A stretch of DNA of 64,000 bases from the NCBI RefSeq assembly GCF_001194135.2, contig NC_068994.1, positions 3,388,540-3,452,539 of the forward strand. The letters are read 5' to 3'. Below are positions 1 to 59,302 of the stretch, piece after piece; within the stretch, counting starts at the first letter, position 1, and every line of letters starts with the position of its first letter. Source of the DNA: Octopus bimaculoides. Taxonomy: Eukaryota. Below the pieces are notes generated by a model. The model was not told the DNA's origin and made no database searches. It saw nothing but the letters and a program-made list of their open reading frames with translations. The translations under genes were made by a program, and so were the position numbers.

Positions 1-47
<47 letters not shown>

Positions 48-135
48 GTATATATACACATACATATATATATATGCATATGTGCATATAAATATGTTTG
101 TGTCTTTATACACATGTACATAAATGTATTTATAA

Positions 136-167
<32 letters not shown>

Positions 168-458
168 ATTAATCAAAGTATACAGTAATATTAATCCATT
201 ACAGCCAATCTTATCAACCAGTTTCACACTGGCTGTTACATAACCAGGCAGTTATCTGAAACAAGTGCTCTTCAGAGATGGAGCCGTTCCCGAAGAGCAT
301 GTTTTTAGATAAGCACCCAGTGATATAACCAAATGGTAAACATCAGCTGTAATGCATCTATAGTATTGTGTACTTCAATTAATATACTCACTCTTTAGAT
401 AAATACATGAGTACCTATTTGTCCTCACTTATGGATTCTTAAACAACTATATATACAT

Positions 459-492
<34 letters not shown>

Positions 493-493
<1 letters not shown>

Positions 494-657
494 CACTCTC
501 TGAGTGGTTGGCGTTAGGAAGGGCATCCAGCTGTAGAAACTCTGCCAAATTTAGATTGGAGCCTGGTGTTGCCATCCGGTTTCACCAGTCCTCAGTCAAG
601 TCGTCCAACCCATGCTAGCATGGAAAGCGGACGTTAAACGATGATGATGATGATGAT
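493..657 (+). repeat. Dispersed repeat 3' module ending in (GAT)n (SINE/RTE-type tail)
   Basis: gagtggttggcgttaggaagggcatccagctgtagaaac..ccaacccatgc..ggacgttaaacgatgatgat recurs several times in the window. Confidence 0.75.
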
Positions 658-675
658 ACACACACACACACATGC

Positions 676-780
<105 letters not shown>

Positions 781-1017
781 TGTATCCATACATACACACA
801 CACACACTGATACATAAATCTATATAAAGTGCCTGTTGCCCTGAAGAAGCGTATTCACAACCTAAGTAAAGAACTCAATACTGCCAGTAGTAGTGTTTAT
901 TTTTCTGTTTCTGAATTGGAATGCTTACAGACATTTTTCAGTCATTTTCGGTGGACTTAAAAATGATTGAAACACATTTGCAAGCTACCATATATACATG
1001 CATACAGACATGAGTAT

Positions 1018-1075
<58 letters not shown>

Positions 1076-1150
1076 GTATATATATACACATACATACATT
1101 ATATAAATACATATATATTCACATACTTATATATATAATGTGTGTATGTA

Positions 1151-1200
<50 letters not shown>

Positions 1201-1204
<4 letters not shown>

Positions 1205-1579
1205 TTAGCTGAGTTAGACGTTAAAATAACCGTCTAAGGGATAGAATTATCCATTATACTACGGGTATATTGCCTATGTTTAACCATGGGTATACATATG
1301 AAAGCATATTATGCTCATAAATTATAGGTAAAGATAAGGATAAACATGAGTTTATCAAGAATCAAAATTTGAAGAAAACAGAAAATGGAGAAATATTGCT
1401 GAACAGCAATTGACTTACATTAATTATTATTCATTAATTCAATACAATTTATTAATTCAATGCAAATAGACTGCAGTCTATTTGTATTGAATTAATAAAT
1501 AATTGTATTGAATTAATAAATAATAATTGATGTAAGTCAATTGTTGTTCGTCAATACTTCTCCATTTTTTTTTGTTATT

Positions 1580-1580
<1 letters not shown>
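1201..1580. mobile_element. (TA)n-flanked element containing a spacerless about 190-bp palindrome (foldback/MITE-like)
   Basis: Non-microsatellite block between two (TA)n tracts; palindrome 1382-1568 centred on CTGCAG at 1471-1476. Confidence 0.45.
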
Positions 1581-1631
<51 letters not shown>

Positions 1632-2110
1632 CGTGTGTGTGTGTATGTATTGGAAAATTGCCATTTTGAACAAAATAGTATAGCACTAGTATATGCCAGT
1701 GAAACACATGTAATGGTTATGTATTGAACGATGTTATAATAAAAATGTTTAACTGAATCTCCTGTTTTATTCTGTTCTCAGATATAATCATATATATATA
1801 TATATGTATATATATATAAAACTGTGACACACATTTTTATACAAGTGTGTGCACATGTATGTAATAATGTGTGTATGTGTTTTGTATTCAGTGTTAAAAT
1901 CATGAGGTCATGTGGTCTACAGTTTAACAACATATTGTTACTTTTATATAAAACTGTTATTTATATAACACATTTCTTGTTTGTTTCTTCTTTATTCACA
2001 CTAAATTTGTTGTTGTTTGCTAAACAACTAAGTCTGATATATTATTTATGTCATTGGTTTACAATACTGAGATAATTTTTGTTTCCAATTGTGACAAATG
2101 TGCTTTGTTG

Positions 2111-2650
2111 CTGTCCCATCAGCTTATCAATTGTCCCATCAGCTTATCAATTGTCCCATCAGCTTGTCAGTTGTCCCATCAGCTTGTCAGTTGTCCCATC
2201 AGCTTATCAGTTGTCCCATCAGCTTGTCAATTGTCCCATCAGCTCATCAGTTGTCCCATTAACTTATCAGTTAACACAACAGATTGTCAGTTATCCTACT
2301 AACCTGTTCATTGTCCTATTAGCTTGTCAGTGAACCCATCAATTTGTCAAGTAACCCATCAACTTATCTATTAGCCCATCAGCTTGTTAGTTGACCCATG
2401 TATTTATGATTTAATACATCGGCCTGTCAATCATCCTATGAGCCTGTCTTTTGTCCCATCACTTCCATAAGCTTGTCAGTTTCCACAGGTTATCAATTGT
2501 CTCTTTAGTTTCTTGGTTTTCCCATCAATTTTTCAATTGTCCCATCAGCTTATTAGTCATTCCATTAGCTTGTCAGCTTGTTCCACTAGTTTGTTGGTTT
2601 GCTCATCAATCTACCAGTTGTTCCATTAGCTTCTCATTTGTTTAATTAAT
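2111..2650. repeat. 20-bp minisatellite A (TTGTCCCATCAGCTTATCAA)
   Basis: Eight near-perfect units at 2111-2270, then progressively diverged units to about 2650. Confidence 0.9.
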
Positions 2651-2849
2651 TAATCTGTTCTTCAATAACCTTTTGGTTGTTGTTTCTTTAATTATGTCGG
2701 TCATTCCATCAGTTGAGCTGCATCCATTGGTTTGTCTGTTTGCATATTAATTCATCTGATGTTCCTTTTATCAGTTTCGATTAGCTAATTAATATACAGT
2801 GTCACACCTGTACAGATTATGAACATAAGGACCTTTATGTCAGTAGCTG

Positions 2850-3525
2850 ATTTTACTATTAGCTATGATGTTTTACCGTCAATAGCTACATTTTGCTATT
2901 AATAACTACAGTTTTTGTGTCAATAGCTACATTTTACCATCAATAGCAACATTTCACCATCCATAGCTACATTCTACCACTAATAGCTACATTTTATCGT
3001 TAATAGCTACATTTTATTGTCAATAGCTACATTTCACTGCCAATAGCTAGATCTCACAATAAATAGCTAAATTTTATTGTCAACATCTGCATATCACCAT
3101 CAATAGCAACATTTTACCACCCATAGCTACATTTCACCGTCAATAGCTACAGTTTACCGTCAATAGCTACATTTTACTATCAATAGCTACATTTTACTGT
3201 CAATAGCTACATTTCACAATAAATAGCTAAGTTTTATTGTCAATAGCTGCATATCACCATCAATAGCTACATTTTACTGTCAATAGCTACATTTTACCGT
3301 CAATAGCTACATTTTACTATCAATAGCTACATTTTACTGTCAATAGCTACATTTCACAATAAATAGCTAAGTTTTATTGTCAATAGCTGCATATCACCAT
3401 CAATAGCTACATTTTACCATGAATAGCAATATTTTACTGCTAATAGCTACATTTTACTGTCAATAGTTACATTTCACAATCAATAGCTACATTTTACCAT
3501 CAGGTGCTATATTTTACTGTCATTT
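2850..3525. repeat. 20-bp minisatellite B (CAATAGCTACATTTTACTGT) with higher-order structure
   Basis: More than 30 in-register units; 3161-3260 is identical to 3301-3400 (140-bp period). Confidence 0.92.
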
Positions 3526-4278
3526 AATAGTCTGTGGAGTTACTCAGTACACTGGACAATCAATTATCACTTTCTCTGTTGTACTGACAATGGTTGTATT
3601 GTACTGTCAGCAGTTTCCATTTAACTGTCATTTGCCACAATATAACATCATTACATCGTGCAGTCAATTATTACTGTTTTGTCAATAATGATATTAAAAT
3701 CAACAATATAACCAATCAGATAAGGTTTGTCAACAATTACATTTATACTGATACGTGAAAGTAGGTGTATATAAAAGTATAGATATTGCTGTATGTATGT
3801 ATACATACAATATATGAATATGTATGCGTTATATAACTATATATATACATATAGATGTATTTATATGTGTGTATATATATGTGCATATGTATGAATGTGT
3901 ATATACATATATATATATATATATATATGTATATATTATATTATATATTACATATTTTATATATATATATATATATATAGATACACACATACACACACAC
4001 ACACATATATATATATATACATATATAAAAGTGTGTCTTGTTATATATTATTGTTATATTTACACTTGTGCATGTGCGTGCATTGTCTTTCTTTAAAAAC
4101 AAGGAATTTCTGTTTGAACAACCTAAATTAATTATTTCAAAGTTCAAATGCTTAATTTGGCATCATATTGCTTTTGTTATTGTTGTTGTTGTTGCTTGGT
4201 GTGAAGATATAAATTTTTTTTTTTATATATATAACTATTTTCTTCTGTTTCATGATAGTGACATGTCTTGGCAATGCA

Positions 4279-6702
4279 TCACTTCATGCAGTGGTTTTGT
4301 GCATCGATTGCACATTTTTGGGAAGTGTGCATTCCCTGAATGCTGGTCCAAGGACTTTGCCTGCCTTGCTTCATACTTCCGCATGGCAACGGGGCCGGTA
4401 CATTCGGCCAGTAAGAGGTTGTCATGGGCGGCATGGCGAAACTTCGCGACCACAGGTAATTATTTTCCCAGCTTTGTGGCATATCTTGTAGGTAAGGGGA
4501 AGTCATCCACGATGACGTCATTGCAGAAGCTTGTAGACGTGCCGAGGCACTGAGGGCCTGTGGGTCCCTTAGACGGTCTTTTAATATTCCAGTCCCTGAG
4601 CTGATGGACCCATCAATCAGTGATGAATTATGGAGAGGGCCATCAGGATCGGGGCTGCCACCAATACTACTGAGGTCAAGACTTGATTTCAAACCCCCAA
4701 TATTCCTTTGAAAGAGTTTATTGTCCCTGTTTGGATATGGTGATGTTAGTGCGGCTGGTGTCAATGGTGGTGACCCAACTGAAGATTTAATTGGTGTACT
4801 ACTGCCATTATTATTATTGTTATTATTATTATTATCGTTGTTGTTGTTACTTCTATCATTTGGTTTGTTCAGTGCAACTGCAGCAGCTGCTGGGGAGGTT
4901 AACGAGAACTTTGCTGTTAATTCCGCTGCTGTGTGTGTTCTCCGGTGATGATTGAGGTTTCCCCTCTGGGAAAATGCCTTTCCGCATACGTTGCATGAAA
5001 AAGGCTTCTCACCCGTATGTTTGCGCATGTGCGTCTTGAGATTTCCCTGTTGACTAAATGCCTTCTGGCACACTGTGCAGATGAATGGTTTCTCTCCGGT
5101 GTGCACCCGTTCGTGGTTCTTCAAACTGATCTGTAAAGTGAATGCTTTTGAGCACATTGTGCATTTGAACAGCTCTCCCGTGTGAGTTCGTCGATGGTTG
5201 TCAAGGTTGATTTTTTGGCAAAATGCCTTCCCACAGTCCATACAACTGTAAGGTTTCTCTCCAGTGTGGGTTCTCAAATGAATTTTCAGATTGCCCTGTT
5301 GACTAAATGCTTTTCCGCAAACTGCACAAACAAATGGTTTTTCTCCTGTATGCACTCGTTCGTGGTTTTTCCATTCTGTCTGTTGGCAGAAAGTGCGGTC
5401 ACAATATGCACAGTGGTACGGCTTTTGGCCTGTGTGAATGCGTTCATGGTTACGTAGATTTATTTGCTGGTAGAAAGCTTTTGAGCAAAACGAACACTTA
5501 AACAGATCTCCAGTGTGAATACGACGGTGATTATCTAAATTTATTTTTTGACAAAACGACTTACCACAAGTGTCGCAGTGATAGGGTTTTTCCCCGGTAT
5601 GAGTTCTTAAATGAGTTCTCAGATTTCCTTGTTGGCTAAACATTTTCGGACAGTAAGTACATTTAAAGGGCTTCTCGCCAGTGTGGACCCGTTCATGGTT
5701 GCGGAGATTAATTTGCAGAGAAAACGCTTTCGAGCAGAAGCGACAGTTGAACAAGTCTCCAGAATGGACACGCCGATGGTTGTCGAGGTTAGTTCTCTGG
5801 CTAAAAGATTTACCACAGGTTTCACAGTTGAAAGGTTTCTCTCCGGAATGTGTTCGTGCATGTATCTTCAAGTTCCCTTGTTGGCTAAAAGATTTTCCAC
5901 ACTCCAAACAAGTAAAAGGCCTTTCACCCGTATGGATCCGTCGGTGGTTTGCCAGATTGGTCCGCTGTGCAAATGCCTTTCCACAAATATCACAATTGAA
6001 TAATTTATCAGCTGACGTCAACCCTACTGAAGCTGCTCCTGCCGTATTGTCACAATGTGAACGACTAAGGTCTATGTCCTTTGTATCTTTTGGGATGCCT
6101 TGGCTGTGAAGATGAGAATGAGAAGAATAAAACGGAAATGCGGAACGACTGGAGAACATGGAGTTTGGATTGTTATTGTGGTCAGCCTCATTGTCAAAGT
6201 TACTGGTGAGGCCAAAAGAACGATCCATTGTTACTTGATCAAAGTTCTTGAAGTCAGAAGAATGTTGAAGTGGAAAAGCTCGACTGAAGAATGAAGTACT
6301 GAATGTCTTCTCTAAGTGTGTCATCTCATGAGCTTCCAGTTGGCTCCTTTGGGCGAAAAACTTTTTACAGAAGCCGCAGTAATACTGCTTGTCTTCTGTA
6401 GAGAGTCGTTCACCCCGGCTGTTGCATTGATGAAGATTGTTGCTGTTATTATTGTTGTTGTTACTACTGTTGTTGTTGTTGCTATTGTTATTGCTGTTGT
6501 CTTGGTGATGGAGGTGACTACTGCTGTTGTTCGATGTGACACGGCTTGAGAGGTTTTTTGTAAAGAAATCATAGCTGAACGGTTTCTCCATAGGAAGAGA
6601 CTTGTCATGGTATTTCACATGGCTGTTGGGGTAATAGGACTGACCATGCACCTCGAAATTGAACTGGTTCCCTGGAGTGTACATCGGCTGCACTGGATAC
6701 AT
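4279..6702 (-). CDS. C2H2 zinc-finger protein ZNF-A (807 aa; 1 isolated + 13 tandem fingers, two poly-Asn tracts, C-terminal Trp motif)
   Basis: Uninterrupted ORF with 14 CxxC-x12-HxxxH fingers and TGEKP-type linkers. Pyrimidine-rich acceptor (ttttgtAG, 6713-6712) 9 nt upstream of gcaccATG. The frame is open through the acceptor, so an upstream coding exon cannot be excluded. Confidence 0.93.
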
Positions 6703-7402: not shown

Positions 7403-7751
7403 CATTCGGTATTAATACTGCTTCCGTCGCTAACACACACGCACGCACGCACACATACACACACACACACATACACACACATACACACACACACGCACGC
7501 ACACACACACACACACATGACGCATTTCCATATAGTTTCCATCTACAAAATATTTTCACTATTGATCAGCCCAAGCTTATAGAAAACACTCCCCCAAAGA
7601 TACCTTTTCTGTTGCTAACACTTTTAGTCACTTATAACATGCAAGAACATGGTGTTTCTTTTCATAGACCACAATACACACAATGGCACACATACGTACA
7701 TATATAATTACAAACACACATATTAATCTCGTTCGTTCATATACTAAGACA

Positions 7752-23921: not shown

Positions 23922-24370
23922 CTATTTGCTCTGTCTCAAAGTACATGGGAAGACACTGGGGGAATTAGTCCAACCTGTGCCCCAGGTAGGGGACATGGCA
24001 GGGAAACCTCTGGCCCAGGAATAACTATTTTCCCAGTTCTGAAGGGTCTGGTGACTGCATGTCGATGGGATACTCAATGGCTGCAGGATCAAGGTGGGAG
24101 GGTTTGGCTGCTGAATACCAACACCACCACCACCGCCACCACCACCACCGCCNNNNNNNNNNNNNNNNNNNNNNNNNNNNNNNNNNNNNNNNNNNNNNNN
24201 NNNNNNNNNNNNNNNNNNNNNNNNNNNNNNNNNNNNNNNNNNNNNNNNNNNNNNNNNNNNNNNNNNNNNNNNNNNNNNNNNNNNNNNNNNNNNNNNNNNN
24301 NNNNNNCTGTGAAGCATGTGGGGTGGAAGATGGTGCAGGGGTTGGGTGTTGCTGTTGTTGCTGTTGTTGT

Positions 24371-24436
<66 letters not shown>

Positions 24437-25857
24437 TGCTGTTGTTGTTGCTGTGTTGGTGGCGGCGGTGCTAGGGGTGGTGGTTGTTGCTGGGCTGCTG
24501 CCGCAGGGGGTGTCTCTACCGGCTGAGATGAAGAATGCTCACAATGGCTGGTGTTCTTTGTGGAACCTGCTCGAGGAGTGTAGGTCTTCCTGTTGGTCTC
24601 CTGGTTGGCTGCGAATGGCTTCTCTCCAGATTCCTGTGACTCAGCGTGATGGTGGTGGTGATGGTAATGGTGATGGTGGTGGTGGTGGTTACAGAAGTTT
24701 TGATGTCGGTTTTGAATCTTTGGTTCATTGTTTCGTTTGGGGGTGACTTTGTGTGCAGAGCAGCAGGTTGGAACAATTGGCGAGGTGGCTTTGCAGCTAT
24801 GGACTAAACAGGTTGTAGCTGGAGCCGGCTGACAACATGGTGATGGAATCTTCTCACCTGTATGGGTTCGTTCATGAGTGTTCAGGTGAGCTCTTTGGCT
24901 AAATGATTTGTGACAATACACACAAGTGAATGGCTTCTCTCCGGTATGAGTTCTTTGGTGATTGTTCAAATGGTCGCGCTGACTAAATGCTTTCTTACAC
25001 ACATGACATTTGAATGGTTTTTCGCCGGTGTGAATGCGTTCATGAGTGTTGAGGTGGGCTTTCTGGCTAAACGACTTAAAGCACACGTCACAGTTGAATG
25101 GTTTCTCCCCTGTGTGAATCCGCTCATGGTTACGCAGGTAAGTTCTCTGACTAAAAGTTTTGTTACAGATGTAACAGCTGAATGCTTTCTCCCCTGTGTG
25201 GACCCTTTCATGATTCCTTAGATGTGCACGCTGACTGAAAGCTTTCAAACAGAACGTGCAGCTGAAGGGTTTCTCTCCCGTGTGGACACGTTGATGGTTA
25301 CTCAAGTGGTCCCTTTGAGCAAACGCTTTACAACACATGTGACATCGATAGGGTTTTTCTCCAGAGTGGACCCTCTCGTGGACTTTCAGGTGAATCTTTT
25401 GGCTGAAAGATTTTGGACAAGACTCACACTGGAATGGTTTCTCTCCTGTATGGATGCGTTCATGGCTCTTCAAGTGGGCTCGTTGACAAAATGCTTTGCA
25501 GCAGTACGCACAACTAAAGTGTTTGCCACCAGCAAATGCTACTTCATGATTGTTCAGATCTGCTCGTCTTGAGAAAGCCTTGCGACAAGTGTTGCACTTG
25601 TATGGCTTCTCCCCGTGTTTGTGATTATAATAAACCGGCTGCTCCATCACCACGGACTTACGATTATTTAAGCTCGAACCTTCCCTCGTTTCACTTGTGT
25701 CATCGCTGCTACCAGGAATGTTGCTGTTATTGTTATTACTGTTATTGTTGTTGTTGTTGTTGTTGCTGTTGTCATTGTTGTCTTGCAGATGTAGACCACA
25801 AGTATGATAGTTTGGTGGTGGCACCATTGTAGGATATATGGGTTGGTCGGAATACAT
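23922..25857 (-). CDS. C2H2 zinc-finger protein ZNF-B (1 degenerate + 8 intact fingers, poly-Asn, poly-His, Q35, poly-Gly); interrupted by N gap 24153-24306
   Basis: ORF from gcaccATG at 25857 with 8 canonical fingers. The gap is 154 N (not a multiple of 3). The paralog-conserved motif WENSYSWARGF...VFPC lies in the frame ending at TAG 23922-23924, not in the frame ending at 24025. Confidence 0.88.
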
Positions 25858-40157: not shown

Positions 40158-41726
40158 ATGTATTCTGTACAGTCTATGGCGTTTCCACAAGCTTTTCCTC
40201 AAAATGACTTGCATCACCACCATCATCATCATCACCACCAGCCACAACAGTTGAAAGTGAACTTGAAACAACCTGTCCCACAACAACAACAGCAACCACC
40301 ACCACAACCACAACAACCACCACCACCACCACCACCACAGCAACCACAACCAACACTACCACTTCAAACATCAACTATCATAGCTCAAGGAATTTCCAGC
40401 TCTGTCCCCGCTGTGTCTTCAGCCAACCATCAACATGTAAACAACAGCAGCAACAGTGCCACAAGTAAGAAACCATTCAAGTGTGACATCTGCCGGAAAG
40501 CCTTTTCTCGCAGAGCAAACTTGGACCATCATGAAAATGCCCCTGCGACAGAAAAGCATTTCAGTTGTGGCTATTGTTTCAAGGCGTTTTCACAGAGAGA
40601 CAAGTTGAAGAGTCACCAAGCTATTCACACGGGAGAGAGAAACTTCCACTGCGACATTTGCCAGAAGTCGTTCACGCAGAAAGATCACCTCAACAACCAC
40701 TCGCGGACACACAGTGGTCATCGGCCTTTTAAATGTCAGGTTTGCTCGAAGGCTTTTTCACAGCGGGCTCATTTGAAAAACCATCATCGCATACACACTG
40801 GCGAGAAGCCATTTCACTGCACCTTCTGTGGCAAAGGGTTTAGCCAAAGTGCACATCTTGCTAAGCACGAACGAGTGCATACTGGTCTCAGGCCATTCAG
40901 CTGTGCCTACTGTGGCAAATCATTTGCACAGCGCAGCAACTTGGACAACCACGAGCGCATCCACACTGGCTTGAAACCCTATCACTGTGGTGTGTGTTCC
41001 AAGTCTTTTGCTCAGCGAGATCATCTAAACAACCATGAACGTATTCACAGTGGTGAGAGACCATACAGGTGCACCACTTGCTCCAAGTCGTTTGCACAGC
41101 GTGCACATCTCAACAACCACAAGCGCATCCACAGCGGCGAGAAACCCTACACATGCTTGATCTGTCAGAAGTCATTCTCGCAGCGAGCTAATCTGAAAAA
41201 GCACGAACGCACACACACTTCGGAAGACATTCAGAAAGCATCATCATCACAGTCAACTGCAGAAAACACCACAGCCTCAGTTGTTGACATGAATTCAACA
41301 CCAGCACCAGCACCAGCTTCCACTACGCCTTCATCACAACAACAAACAGTTCACACTCTTAATGTGTCTCCTGCCTCTTCAGCTTCGTTAATGATGAGTG
41401 CATCACCTTGTTGTGCCTCATCGTTTTCCACACACCCTCAGGATCCCCATCTGCATCCCCATCAAGTGATGGTGCCAGACAGACTGTCAAACAGCTACTG
41501 TTGGTCTCGTGGCTTTCCTGTCACTGCCTGGAGTGATAGCCCTGCCGTGCCAACAGTCCCCGCCGGCAGTGTGTTTCCTTGCAATGGCGGCATTGTTGGA
41601 GTGCACAGTAGCGGTGTGGGGGTGGTGTGTAGTGCTGGAACTGGCTGCAACAGCCAACACCCAAATAAACATGGAATACAACTGGATCTCAATAAACCCA
41701 ATTCTCATCATAAAGGAAAGCATTAG
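40158..41726 (+). CDS. C2H2 zinc-finger protein ZNF-C (522 aa; 1 degenerate + 8 intact fingers, His/Gln/Pro-rich N-terminus, C-terminal Trp motif)
   Basis: Intact ORF starting gagccATG; finger block 40476-41216; candidate acceptor (ctcttcctgctcatccAG, 40134-40135) 22 nt upstream; AATAAA at 41861-41866. Confidence 0.93.
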   Translation: MYSVQSMAFPQAFPQNDLHHHHHHHHHQPQQLKVNLKQPVPQQQQQPPPQPQQPPPPPPPQQPQPTLPLQTSTIIAQGISSSVPAVSSANHQHVNNSSNSATSKKPFKCDICRKAFSRRANLDHHENAPATEKHFSCGYCFKAFSQRDKLKSHQAIHTGERNFHCDICQKSFTQKDHLNNHSRTHSGHRPFKCQVCSKAFSQRAHLKNHHRIHTGEKPFHCTFCGKGFSQSAHLAKHERVHTGLRPFSCAYCGKSFAQRSNLDNHERIHTGLKPYHCGVCSKSFAQRDHLNNHERIHSGERPYRCTTCSKSFAQRAHLNNHKRIHSGEKPYTCLICQKSFSQRANLKKHERTHTSEDIQKASSSQSTAENTTASVVDMNSTPAPAPASTTPSSQQQTVHTLNVSPASSASLMMSASPCCASSFSTHPQDPHLHPHQVMVPDRLSNSYCWSRGFPVTAWSDSPAVPTVPAGSVFPCNGGIVGVHSSGVGVVCSAGTGCNSQHPNKHGIQLDLNKPNSHHKGKH

Positions 41727-51633: not shown

Positions 51634-52701
51634 TTATATGTTCATATAGTGCGTCACCCCTTCGTGCTGTGGTATATCCGTGGTATGATGTGCTTGAGAT
51701 ACACTGAGGGTCGCTTGGTAAGTTTCTGAAGTTGCTGCAGCAGTGTTCTGTGGGACACAACTCAGTTTACGGTCGCCAAGTTTATTGGTTCGCTGGTGTC
51801 GCTCCAGATGGTCTTTACGAGAAAAGGCAAAGCCGCAAATGTTACATTTGAAGGGTCTCTCGCCCGTGTGCGTCCGTTTGTGGACAGTGAGGTGGTATTT
51901 CTGGGAGAACGACTTGGTACACATATCACAGCAGAATATCTTCTCGTTGGTGTGGGCCTTTTTGTGTCTCTCTAGATAGCTGTTCTCTGAGAACGCCTTC
52001 CCACAAACGTCACACTTGTAGGGAAGCAAGGCAGCATGAATTCGCTCATGCATATCTGCATCGGACCTTTCTGTGAAGGCTTTCCAGCAGGCTTTACAGT
52101 TGAATGGATTATCGTCTTGGTAGTTAGCAGGCACCTGTGGTTGGGGTTGAGGCGGCGGCGGCGGTGGAGGCGGTGGTGGTGGTGGTGGCGGCTGTGGCTT
52201 CTGATAGGTAGTGCTCTGGTTCTGGAATAGAGATTCTTCGTGTGTCTTAAAATGGCGAGTTAGATCTCCATTTCTTCCGAAAGCACAGCCGCAAATATTA
52301 CATTTATATGGTTTGTCAACAGCAAAAGATCTTGCAGTGTTTGGGTTGGGATTCTCATACTGGGGGGCCATCGAAGGCATGGTCCCCTGCCCATGGGTTT
52401 TCATGTGACGAGTCAGATTACCATTTCTTGAGAAACAGAAACCACAAATGTTGCACTTGAAAGGTTTCTCGCCAGTGTGTATGGTCTGGTGCTGTTTCAG
52501 GTGTGATTTATGAGAGAACGATTTTCCGCAAACATCACAACCAAATGGTTTGACAGCCTGATGGGTGAGTTTATGCCTCTCCAGGTTGTCAAACCGTGAG
52601 AAACCTTTACCACAGATATCGCAGCTATGACTTGTCTCGATGGCATGAATCACTTCAGTTAGTTCGTAACCTGGAATGTTGGAGGTGATGATGTGATTCA
52701 T
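51634..52701 (-). CDS. C2H2 zinc-finger protein ZNF-D (355 aa from first ATG; 7 intact fingers + 1 lacking the second His; poly-Pro spacer)
   Basis: The ORF track starts at a non-ATG codon at 52743 inside the polypyrimidine tract. Strong acceptor (ttttttgtttgtcttttgtAG, 52728-52727) then acaccATG at 52701. The frame is open across the acceptor, so an upstream coding exon is possible. Confidence 0.9.
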   Translation of the reverse strand: MNHIITSNIPGYELTEVIHAIETSHSCDICGKGFSRFDNLERHKLTHQAVKPFGCDVCGKSFSHKSHLKQHQTIHTGEKPFKCNICGFCFSRNGNLTRHMKTHGQGTMPSMAPQYENPNPNTARSFAVDKPYKCNICGCAFGRNGDLTRHFKTHEESLFQNQSTTYQKPQPPPPPPPPPPPPPPQPQPQVPANYQDDNPFNCKACWKAFTERSDADMHERIHAALLPYKCDVCGKAFSENSYLERHKKAHTNEKIFCCDMCTKSFSQKYHLTVHKRTHTGERPFKCNICGFAFSRKDHLERHQRTNKLGDRKLSCVPQNTAAATSETYQATLSVSQAHHTTDIPQHEGVTHYMNI

Positions 52702-53649
52702 GGTGTCGTCTCTTCTGGCACCAATGCTACAAAAGACAAACAAAAAAAAAAAACAAGCAGTTAGGATTTTGAAAAAACATCCAGTGTATATGTGTGTGAA
52801 TGTGATGTGGTAGGGTTAATTTGTTGACCTGTGGAAGATTGTTGCATATCCTAGATAAAGCAGTTGAGATCATGTGTGACCACAGACATCATGAATATGA
52901 TTAGGACATCAGGGTGAAAGACCAAGATTAGATCTCAACAGACTGGACATCACAGATGAAATAACAGATCAACACATGTATTGATATGCTGATTCTATGC
53001 GGAATACCTAGTCAACCCACATCATTTCTGAAAAACACAGAGTAGACTAAAAGTGAGAACTTCGTTAAGGGTACACGTATCTGTGGAGTGTTCAGCCACT
53101 TGCACGTTAACAGGAAAGACTGATTTAGTAGAAACAGGTGATGGATATGAAAGATGACTGCTCTATCTAACAGGATGAATAACCATGCAAACATTCTCTC
53201 AATAGTTCCTATCTGAGGAATTAAGATAGGAATTATGATTTTAAGCAGTTTCCTCTATGATTCCTGATTATATCTTATACTGGTCAACAGGAATTGCAAC
53301 TGGATACATATGTCTTGGTCACGGATACAGTACAGTAAACTGTATCATACTGTGGTATCTACTTACGGCTAAGTAAACTGAGCTATAGACAGAAACATGT
53401 CCTTGTCATGGCCACAGGGAAATGAACTCAACACTGTTGGCAATACAGATGTTTTGGATAATGAACTCAGTGTTTCAAATCCACCTCAAATAAAGTGAAA
53501 GTGTCAATGTATGAAAGGGCTGCAGGTTTGTCACAGTTGGAATCTGATCCTCATCTTCAATTTCATGTTGAGAACCAGATTATCACCTGGATAAGGCACA
53601 AGTCTATCACACATTACTTTCCTTAGCTAAACTTCAGACAATAAGATGA

Positions 53650-56845: not shown

Positions 56846-59302
56846 CTTGGAATGCCAAAGCTGACATTGGGATCTAACGCAGGTCTGTGGATCTTAAGGT
56901 CATGTCAAACCGTGTAACCCATGGCAGCATTGAAAACGGACGTGTGATGGTAATGTACATAGAAACACGTGTTCTGATGCATAAATATGAAGACACGTGA
57001 ATGTATCTCCAGTCACAGCCCGTTTCGTTCCACACACACACACACATACATAATGTACAGGCATCCATATACGCACACACACAACACATACATACATCCA
57101 CATAACCTAAACACACACACACGCATTCATAAATAACGCGCACGCACACACTCAAAACACATTCACATGCAAGCAACAAACAATACACACATTTCATAAG
57201 GAAGGAACGCACACACACACACATTTCATAAAGGGACGCACACAGTAAATCCAATGAAATTCCCTTACACAGCAGACTTTGAAGGATCAGCTCTTACATA
57301 GTGAGATACAACGTGATGTAGTGACGCTCATACCTTTCCAGAAGAACATTAGTAAAGCAAGCGAGGCAGGTCCGGTCATATATGAATTCTAAAAGAGGTA
57401 AGAATTTAAGAATGTAGCAGTTTAAACACAACAAAACTGGGTCTAATAACGCCTCTGGTTTCTTTCGAGGCCCTATGTGAGCATTCTTTCGGTATGCCGT
57501 CTATGTGATTTGAACCTGATGTCTGGGCGTTACTTACGAGGAATCGCATGAATATTTAACGTCTCTAACCTGAAGTCTTGGAGTTTTCTATTTTTTAAGT
57601 AGTTACATAGATGTTATCCAGTAATGCTACTAAGATAGCAGCTGGATTCGAAACAGAATCCCGCTAATTGCCGATCAGGCGGGTTTACCGTCGACCTAGT
57701 CAGTCAAACTTCCGCTATCAGCTAACAACAATAACAAGAGTGTCAAAGGCGGGCCAAACTATAAGATAAGTAGGTAAATCACAGCTTTTAGCCAGCTCAA
57801 CCATGTATATAATTAGTAATAATGATACGTAATGACTTGTAAATTAAGTACACAACCTCTTTTAGCACCCATTGCATAAATGGTACTTCAATGATATCGA
57901 CCCCGGAAGAAATATAAAGTACATAGTGCAGTTTTCTGTCATATTTCCATTTATATTTCGAGAGCATCAGAAGAATGTAAATTCCCGCCCCCACCTCTCG
58001 GACTTGAACGATATTTTATCGCTCACGGAAGGATGAAAGGTAAAACCGACTTTGATGGGATTCGAACTAGGATTGCTAAAGATAAACTAAGAAATAAAAT
58101 TACTTGGAAGAAACTTCTAGAAAAATTATATATATATATGAGACACTTCGATCACGATAAACTATAAATTGATATATAATAAGAAAGGTGAGAACCAAAG
58201 TAAGATAAGGTATAGAATTCGTGTGAGTGTAAAGGGAGTTATATCGGCAGTTGGGGGACAATAAGTAATCAATAAAATTGGTGAGGACCCAATGTAATGA
58301 TCGAAACGTCAGCAAATGCAGGGGAAATACGGGAGAAGTCAGAGGTTTGGGAAACGGAAAGAAATAGTTTTTAATCTGTGGAAATATTTGAATAAGAGTT
58401 TAGTGTGTCTGTATCCTGGTTTGGATTAAATGAAACGATCGTTAATGGGTAATTAATATATCTGCAAATATTCATAATATAATAATAGCTACTGAACACA
58501 TAAACCCATATATATATAACTCTATCAATGTATATCTCTCTCTATATATATGTGTGTGTGTGCGTGTGTAATTTTATATTTATAGAGACGTATTTCTAAT
58601 AGCAGACACAATAATAGAGATACTTTTTTTTAAAAAAAACATTTATTTCAAACTTTACAATTGGGCAGCCAAAGAAAGAGACATGCGCTAATTGTGACGA
58701 ATTATTAATTAGATCATACCCTCTCCCCCCGCCCCATTATTCCAGATAGCAAGTTCGAAACTTATGAAAGGGTTTAAAAAGGGATAACAAAGTGAAGGTA
58801 GGGGAAAACCGATGTCAGTTCCCTTTGATGCTGGGTGAAGCATATTTTTGGCGGATAGTTTTAACGGTAAAAACCAGGGGGGAAGGGGACTAGCTTAACA
58901 TAACTCAATATATAAAAGATACACACATATATATATATACATATATATATGAGTTTACACGAATATGCATGTATTTCCAAGCTGTGTAATATATATAAAC
59001 TAAAAATATGTATATGTGTGTGTGTGTATAGCTGATGTTAGGATATTTTTGTGAAGTGGAGCGAGTCGGTTGTTTCTAAGTGTTGGCGGTGTAATGGGTT
59101 TGAAATAAGAGGAGGGAAATAGCTATTATTTAATGAACATCTGCGAAGTGGTTGGCACGGACACTGAATTAAACAGAAACAGCAGCACTTTTTGTGTTAT
59201 CTTCGGTTGATTAATATAGAAAGGGAGAAGAAAGAGAAGAGATCGGAGAAAGACAGAAACATGCATTGGCAACTAACAACAAATAAGAAATAGACATTTA
59301 TC

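Follow-up and report, generated by a model that had tools for sequence, protein, structure and literature searches.

Three of the four C2H2 zinc-finger genes in a 64,000-nucleotide stretch of the Octopus bimaculoides genome (contig NC_068994.1, positions 3,388,540 to 3,452,539 of the forward strand; henceforth the window) end in a conserved C-terminal tail that, judging by its sequence, is an undescribed non-finger signature. The core of this tail is a block with the consensus [WL]-[ES]-N-x-Y-x-W-x-R-x-[FY]...W...P-C. An earlier note on the same DNA had reported the block in the genes here called ZNF-A, ZNF-B and ZNF-C, at positions that proved exact to the base, and had proposed that it is a lineage-specific motif for docking an effector or cofactor. 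Together with a second motif at the start of the proteins (short form MYPxQPxY..GNQxNF), the tail would mark out a small group of poly-C2H2 transcription factors, a subfamily restricted to coleoid cephalopods. The zinc-finger open reading frames (ORFs) of the window and their conserved elements are as follows.

4279–6702, minus strand: ZNF-A coding ORF, 807 amino acids, single exon, 14 C2H2 fingers (Pfam)
4381–4470, minus strand: ZNF-A motif block, as noted earlier
4333–4557, minus strand: ZNF-A extended conserved tail, amino acids 716–790, predicted to be disordered
6655–6702, minus strand: ZNF-A N-terminal family motif
23922–25857, minus strand: ZNF-B coding region, at least 8 fingers counted, polyQ/polyH linker, an N gap inside
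23943–24035, minus strand: ZNF-B motif block WENSYSWARGFPAMSPTWGTGWTNSPSVFPC, followed by TLRQSK and the stop codon
25810–25857, minus strand: ZNF-B N-terminal family motif MYSDQPIYPTMVPPPN
40158–41726, plus strand: ZNF-C coding ORF, 522 amino acids, 9 fingers by Pfam zf-C2H2 and 8 by strict pattern
41484–41582, plus strand: ZNF-C motif block LSNSYCWSRGFPVTAWSDSPAVPTVPAGSVFPC, the most divergent copy
40158–40205, plus strand: ZNF-C N-terminal motif MYSVQSMAFPQAFPQN, degenerate, with MYSxQS alone retained and no match to the local N-terminal profile
51634–52743, minus strand: ZNF-D, 369 amino acids

The block is highly specific within the window. Its six-frame translation contains exactly three matches to the strict pattern N[SN]Y.W[SA]R[GS]F, and 200 shuffles yielded none; for the looser Y.W.R.F the count is likewise three, where shuffles average 0.24. 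When a hidden Markov model (HMM) of the tails of ten lineages was run against every ORF of the window, it matched those of ZNF-A, ZNF-B and ZNF-C only. ZNF-D had been singled out in the earlier note as lacking the block, and neither the pattern nor the family HMM finds it there; the N-terminal family motif is missing from ZNF-D as well.

The anatomy of the tail was derived from an alignment of the same ten lineages. The Tyr, the central Trp and the Arg are invariant, as is the first Asn, by eye, once the divergent cuttlefish copy L008b (W-S-N-H-Y) is put in register. Nine of the ten have the first Trp (ZNF-C has Leu) and eight the Glu, while the residue at +2 from the Arg is always aromatic (Phe in eight, Tyr in two) and is followed by Pro in eight. 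A second Trp stands 14–20 residues further on in nine lineages, then x-N-x-P and usually [PS]-C; ZNF-C carries an 8-residue insertion ahead of its SVFPC end. Conservation reaches about 30 residues upstream of the reported block (R-L-Q ... S-x-W-M-[ST]-S-x-x-L-[HQ]-[DE]-M-x-Q-S) and about 20 downstream (C-x-x-[KR]-[QP]-x-K, to which the A and E lineages add W-x-x-[IL]-Q-x-[MI]-H). Judged from this alignment, the conserved unit is some 65–75 residues long and the block, of about 30, is its core. The Pro-Cys, which had been described as terminal, does close the block but not the protein, since 28–71 residues separate the invariant Arg from the stop codon. In ZNF-A the block lies 120–150 residues C-terminal of the last finger, and the tail is richer in Trp, Tyr, Met and Pro than the adjacent linker.

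All block-bearing proteins also share a start motif, M-[YF]-[PSQ]-x-Q-[PSF]-[MVI]-[YF]-x-x-G-[NK]-Q-x-[NS]-[FY]. Its carriers are ZNF-A, ZNF-B and ZNF-C, the last in a degenerate form (MYSVQSM), plus the loci L002, L005, L007, L008 (two ORFs), L009 and L010; the three window genes have MY[PS]xQ[PS] in common. The N- and C-terminal motifs are the only conserved sequences outside the fingers and they co-occur in every lineage examined. The statement that these proteins are unalignable outside the fingers thus holds for the linkers, but not for the shared start or the tail. A further match to the N-terminal motif at 57001–57102 was discarded as a translated CA-microsatellite.

To assess how widely the tail is distributed, a 43-position profile made from four tails was compared, using HMMER, with 1.84 billion representative proteins, each standing for a cluster at 50% identity; the distribution described here derives from this one profile search. 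Eleven proteins matched at E<=1e-3, of which seven were real, all from cephalopods, and four were repeat or bacterial chance matches. The real matches come from Octopus bimaculoides, O. sinensis and O. vulgaris, from the cuttlefish Acanthosepion pharaonis and from Logan assemblies. They include a cuttlefish orthologue of ZNF-A (P0083 from Logan assemblies; P0128, which is A. pharaonis CAE1165441.1), a fourth Octopus paralogue, ZNF-E (P0130/P0138, O. bimaculoides XP_014769006.1), with its cuttlefish counterpart (P0131/P0139), two more A. pharaonis proteins (P0129 and P0132) and one Logan fragment (P0134). ZNF-E lies 1.6 Mb from the window on the same chromosome, and in O. sinensis the distance between ZNF-A and ZNF-E is 2.3 Mb. 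No real match fell outside the cephalopods, in a collection that contains molluscan proteomes (Solemya and Babylonia proteins are present). As far as this search can see, the block is confined to coleoid cephalopods, as the lineage-specificity proposed earlier would have it, and the cuttlefish orthologues of ZNF-A and ZNF-E both have the tail, so that it is conserved beyond the octopuses. The expectation that many C2H2 genes would carry the block was not borne out: the seven real matches fall into some five to seven paralogue lineages.

Two further kinds of search add little to this picture. Word-indexed homologue searches with the tail alignments A1 and A3 returned no scored match from 4 and 960 candidates, respectively, for a query that is short and of low complexity; a similar profile scored 36–92 bits in the exhaustive search, and therefore these nulls reflect limits of the tool and not absence. 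A full-length search with ZNF-C returned mostly generic vertebrate KRAB/SCAN zinc-finger proteins, and also surfaced P0083 and P0120, the latter identical to the ZNF-A protein and located at ~3.39 Mb on O. bimaculoides chromosome CM046614.1 (GCA_001194135.2). ZNF-A itself belongs to a cluster at 90% identity or more with O. sinensis XP_029645462.2 and O. vulgaris CAI9733406.1 ('zinc finger protein 271-like').

In genomic DNA each tail ends one long uninterrupted ORF that opens with the N-terminal motif and continues with 9–19 fingers. Such ORFs, with motif, fingers and tail, were found at L002, L005, L008 (twice), L009 (868 amino acids) and L010 (801 amino acids), while L007 has an 11-finger ORF with the tail shifted by one frame. 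The two cuttlefish ORFs at L008, 710 and 688 amino acids long and 30 kb apart, are on the same strand, the second with the variant WSNHYGWPRGFPVTPRW:

L008 9980–12109: first family member
L008 40738–42801: second family member

This pair in cuttlefish echoes the clustering of ZNF-A, ZNF-B and ZNF-C in the octopus window, and clustering may be an old trait of the subfamily. Given the long intact ORFs in the DNA, the short or finger-less protein models P0129, P0132 and P0128 are annotation artefacts. The deposited A. pharaonis models (GCA_903632075.3) are truncated or mis-spliced (L008 10001–37994, L009 10001–10750, L010 10001–12325): CAE1244983.1 has its entire finger array spliced out, CAE1144206.1 starts inside the array and CAE1165441.1 skips fingers, and behind them the DNA holds uninterrupted ORFs of 710–868 amino acids. 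Two A. pharaonis records are named 'KRAB', with no KRAB domain evident in their sequences.

In a distance tree of the tails, the A copies pair with each other across species, as do the E copies and the group of ZNF-B, L008a (the first cuttlefish copy) and L007. This pairing implies at least three duplications older than the split between octopus and cuttlefish. From the tree, then, the subfamily is old, and its A, E, B-like and other lineages were present before the two groups diverged.

We next consider selection on the tail, expressed as the proportions of non-synonymous (pN) and synonymous (pS) differences. When octopus ZNF-A is compared with its cuttlefish orthologue, pS has reached saturation (0.8–1.05). 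pN is 0.068 in the fingers, 0.25–0.32 in the N-terminal part and 0.44 in the linker that follows the fingers, and falls again to 0.149 over the whole tail, with 0.031 in the 27 codons just 5' of the motif (amino acids 721–747) and 0.139 in the motif block (748–786). The low dN/dS that the earlier note anticipated shows in the tail, whose pN of 0.03–0.15 contrasts with the 0.44 of the adjacent linker while pS is at saturation. Among the paralogues of the window the 12-codon core gives pN 0.19–0.30 and pS 0.71–1.28. Saturated synonymous sites next to low pN indicate constraint on the amino-acid sequence and not on the DNA; by this measure, the tail is under purifying selection at the protein level and has been since before the split between Octopodiformes and Decapodiformes.

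What the tail looks like to structure and domain databases is quickly told. Pfam found finger-type families and sub-threshold noise only in full-length ZNF-A, ZNF-C and ZNF-D and in the ZNF-B tail, with no match to KRAB, SCAN, BTB or ZAD, so the earlier note rightly recognised none of these accessory modules; with nine tails as queries, no Pfam family was hit at E<=10. When PDB sequences were searched with a tail profile, no chain matched, the best alignment covering 13 residues at E 0.37. The literature searched contained none of the strings NNYLW, YLWSRGF and WSRGFP, and of the papers on zinc-finger evolution in cephalopods and metazoans the two closest to the subject describe no accessory motif. 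An already described domain, which would have undone the original proposal, was thus found in none of these sources. AlphaFold2 gave the isolated ZNF-A tail a mean predicted local distance difference test score (pLDDT) of 53.7 (range 46–59) and no secondary structure, from a 9-sequence alignment. In full-length ZNF-A, modelled from a 4-sequence alignment, the fingers reached 70–85, while residues 1–105 and 600–807 remained at 27–34 without secondary structure, the tail being at ~28. These models support, without proving, that the tail is intrinsically disordered, a setting in which a docking motif would be expected, and the N-terminal motif likewise is predicted to lie within a disordered N-terminus.

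On balance we think it probable, if not by much, that this disordered C-terminal region carries a cluster of short linear motifs by which the protein docks a conserved partner in the nucleus. In this model the contact surface would consist of the invariant Tyr, Trp and Arg and the aromatic residue, supplemented by the second Trp and the Pro-Cys; a conserved nuclear protein would bind there and connect the fingers on the DNA to a regulatory output. Both the binding of a partner and its being a transcriptional cofactor are inferred. A more specific version, that the tail, perhaps with the N-terminal motif, is a coleoid-specific disordered Trp/Arg docking or effector module recruiting a dedicated co-regulator, we offer tentatively and think more probably wrong than right. 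The favoured functional analogy is with SNAG- and eh1-type docking. SNAG (Snail/Gfi), eh1, the Groucho-binding WRPW and the CtBP-binding PxDLS are, like the core of the tail, short aromatic- or Arg-centred peptides in disordered termini, much better conserved than the sequence around them; they act by docking a cofactor, as the tail would. Their patterns, as generally defined, are nevertheless absent here (no FxIxxIL, no PxDLS, no N-terminal MPRSF), and the conserved stretch is about 65 amino acids long. WRPW reads W-R-P-[WY] and usually sits at the extreme C-terminus; the tails have W-[SAPG]-R-[GSAP]-[FY] instead, with 28–71 residues still to come after the Arg. Comparison by eye with LIR/AIM, WIN, PY-NLS, CaaX and W-acidic kinesin motifs showed none that fits the invariant positions. 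A class I SH3-like pattern, [RK]-x-x-P-x-x-P, fits six of the ten lineages (R-G-F-P-V-P-P and variants) but not ZNF-A (R-S-F-A-M-P-P), ZNF-B, ZNF-C or L007; it is common in Pro-rich sequence, and a possible SH3-type ligand inside the motif is a weak lead.

Several observations weigh against docking, or against the limits we have drawn around the subfamily. The AlphaFold alignments were shallow (9 and 4 sequences), which leaves room for a small fold or for folding on binding. Divergent copies can escape the 43-position profile: L008b was not among its matches, and ZNF-C reaches just 57 bits even with a local HMM that includes it, so that homologues in Nautilus or other molluscs could have been missed. 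Finally, the tails of O. bimaculoides and O. sinensis are nearly without synonymous change. The ZNF-A tail (4333–4557, minus strand, against L005) has one synonymous difference in 75 codons (pS 0.02, against 0.15–0.20 elsewhere), and the ZNF-E tail (L006 2786–3064 against L002) has none in 93 codons (pS 0.075–0.12 elsewhere), which leaves room for an added constraint at the nucleotide level.

Of the other explanations, the one that survives best is that the N- and C-terminal motifs act together, within or between molecules (auto-inhibition, or homo- or heterodimerisation among paralogues), with no outside cofactor. The constant company of the two motifs, as the sole conserved non-finger sequence and at the two disordered ends, fits such self-association, but common descent explains their co-occurrence equally. 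Moreover, AlphaFold confidence in the full-length model is not raised at either end (pLDDT ~27–34), and ZNF-C retains its C-terminal block though its N-terminal motif has largely decayed. We regard this alternative as rather improbable.

Less probable still is that the tail folds on its own into a small domain, for instance a WW-like one (P-x-S-W-E ... W-x-x-x-P, with a pair of Trp 20 residues apart). With about 65 conserved residues the tail is longer than one linear motif would normally be, and WW domains carry 'GWE' in their consensus, which the 'SWE' and the Trp spacing of the tail resemble. However, the nine tails match no Pfam family, WW included, at E<=10, no PDB sequence matches, and neither AlphaFold model has a strand or helix in the tail, at pLDDT 46–59 alone and ~28 in context.

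It is very unlikely that the tail is a docking motif for PBC/TALE proteins (Pbx/Exd) analogous to the Hox hexapeptide, a likeness to which the earlier note had pointed. The Y-x-W-x-R spacing on which it was based is indeed present in all ten lineages, and all of them, having Arg two residues after the Trp, fit the loose published definition of a PBC-interaction motif, in which an invariant Trp with hydrophobic surroundings has a basic residue at +2 to +5 (PMC4539518). This definition is very permissive and many unrelated Trp-Arg peptides fit it. The rest of the analogy fails. The hexapeptide core [YF]-P-W-M is found in none of the ten lineages, position 2 being L/S/C/G/N instead of Pro and position 4 S/A/P/G instead of Met. 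The hexapeptide is scored within ~30 residues upstream of a homeodomain (PMC4539518), whereas no member has a homeodomain and the block lies C-terminal of the fingers, more than 100 residues from the DNA-binding array. The ~65 conserved residues are also far more than a hexapeptide, and the block should not be classed as one.

Equally hard to sustain is the idea that a nucleotide-level element accounts for the conservation, such as an RNA structure serving as a substrate for adenosine-to-inosine editing, a 3'-proximal regulatory element or an overlapping feature of the opposite strand. It would explain the near-zero synonymous change in the ZNF-A and ZNF-E tails of the two octopuses. Mismatch-free stretches of 180–270 nt, however, also occur within the finger arrays of ZNF-A and ZNF-E, and for that reason the low octopus pS is not specific to the tail; between octopus and cuttlefish the tail is saturated (pS 0.8–1.05) with its amino acids kept, and the paralogue cores show pS of 0.7–1.3 with pN of 0.2–0.3. 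Least credible is that the block is a functionless, neutral relic of ancestry in recent tandem duplicates: ZNF-A, ZNF-B and ZNF-C are neighbours and clearly paralogous, but they are old, with orthologue pairs in cuttlefish, and the substitution pattern already contradicts neutrality, for N, Y, W and R have stayed invariant in ten lineages in spite of saturated synonymous sites and linkers that can no longer be aligned.

As to the window itself, its DNA is AT-rich and eukaryotic (37.6% G+C, five N gaps), and no frame in it bears fingers beyond the four zinc-finger ORFs. The zinc-finger proteins have tandem C-x2-C-x12-H-x3-4-H fingers joined by TGEKP-type linkers, with Pfam zf-C2H2 and zf-H2C2_2 matches at E 1e-41 to 1e-94. 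A 154-N assembly gap (24153–24306) splits ZNF-B between the polyQ linker and the tail, and the mechanical ORF call ends there in a false frame (...SELGK*). Tail and finger ORF are in frame if the gap is deleted or its length is a multiple of three; a single continuous ZNF-B ORF is likely, its continuity being inferred across the join. Homopolymer runs are found in the non-finger parts: polyAsn in ZNF-A (6430–6500, minus strand), some 40 Gln plus polyHis in ZNF-B (24310–24480, minus strand) and polyHis/Gln/Pro in ZNF-C (40180–40360, plus strand). They have no conserved counterpart in cuttlefish ZNF-A. In the A, E and L009 lineages about every third or fourth finger linker is one residue short (TG[DE]L[FY]x against TGEKP[FY]x), which gives the array a periodic unit of 3–4 fingers (ZNF-A 4990–6000, minus strand; also ZNF-E at L006, and L009); the linkers of ZNF-B and ZNF-C are canonical throughout. 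The flanks of ZNF-A (window 1–4030 and 7430–7520; L005 12700–18700) are dense in tandem and dispersed repeats, with hundreds of blastn matches between octopus species.

Coleoid cephalopods have more than 1,400 C2H2 genes, an expansion that has been linked to the evolution of the nervous system, and octopus- or squid-specific expansions account for hundreds of them (PMC12513265). Conserved, lineage-restricted non-finger sequences on C2H2 arrays are known elsewhere, as KRAB and SCAN in tetrapods, ZAD in insects and FiNZ in cyprinid fish. In this respect, and in belonging to a clade known for zinc-finger expansion (PMC12513265, PMC10547256), the tail is alike, but those are N-terminal folded or helical domains present in hundreds of genes, whereas the block is C-terminal, predicted to be disordered, without a Pfam model, accompanied by a separate N-terminal motif and found in a handful of old paralogues. 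Since few lineages carry it, its reach is a handful of genes and not the whole family; judged by its distribution, the block does not serve the large octopus expansions as their accessory module and is no equivalent of KRAB. It does provide a handle on at least one subfamily whose paralogues are older than the octopus–cuttlefish split: as a peptide it can be used in pull-downs, and in reporter assays it can be altered by point mutation. To our knowledge, none of the cephalopod C2H2 genes has a described module for effector function or cofactor recruitment. If the tail is indeed an effector module, it would be the first non-finger functional module of these genes, and would give an old zinc-finger subfamily a common regulatory output.

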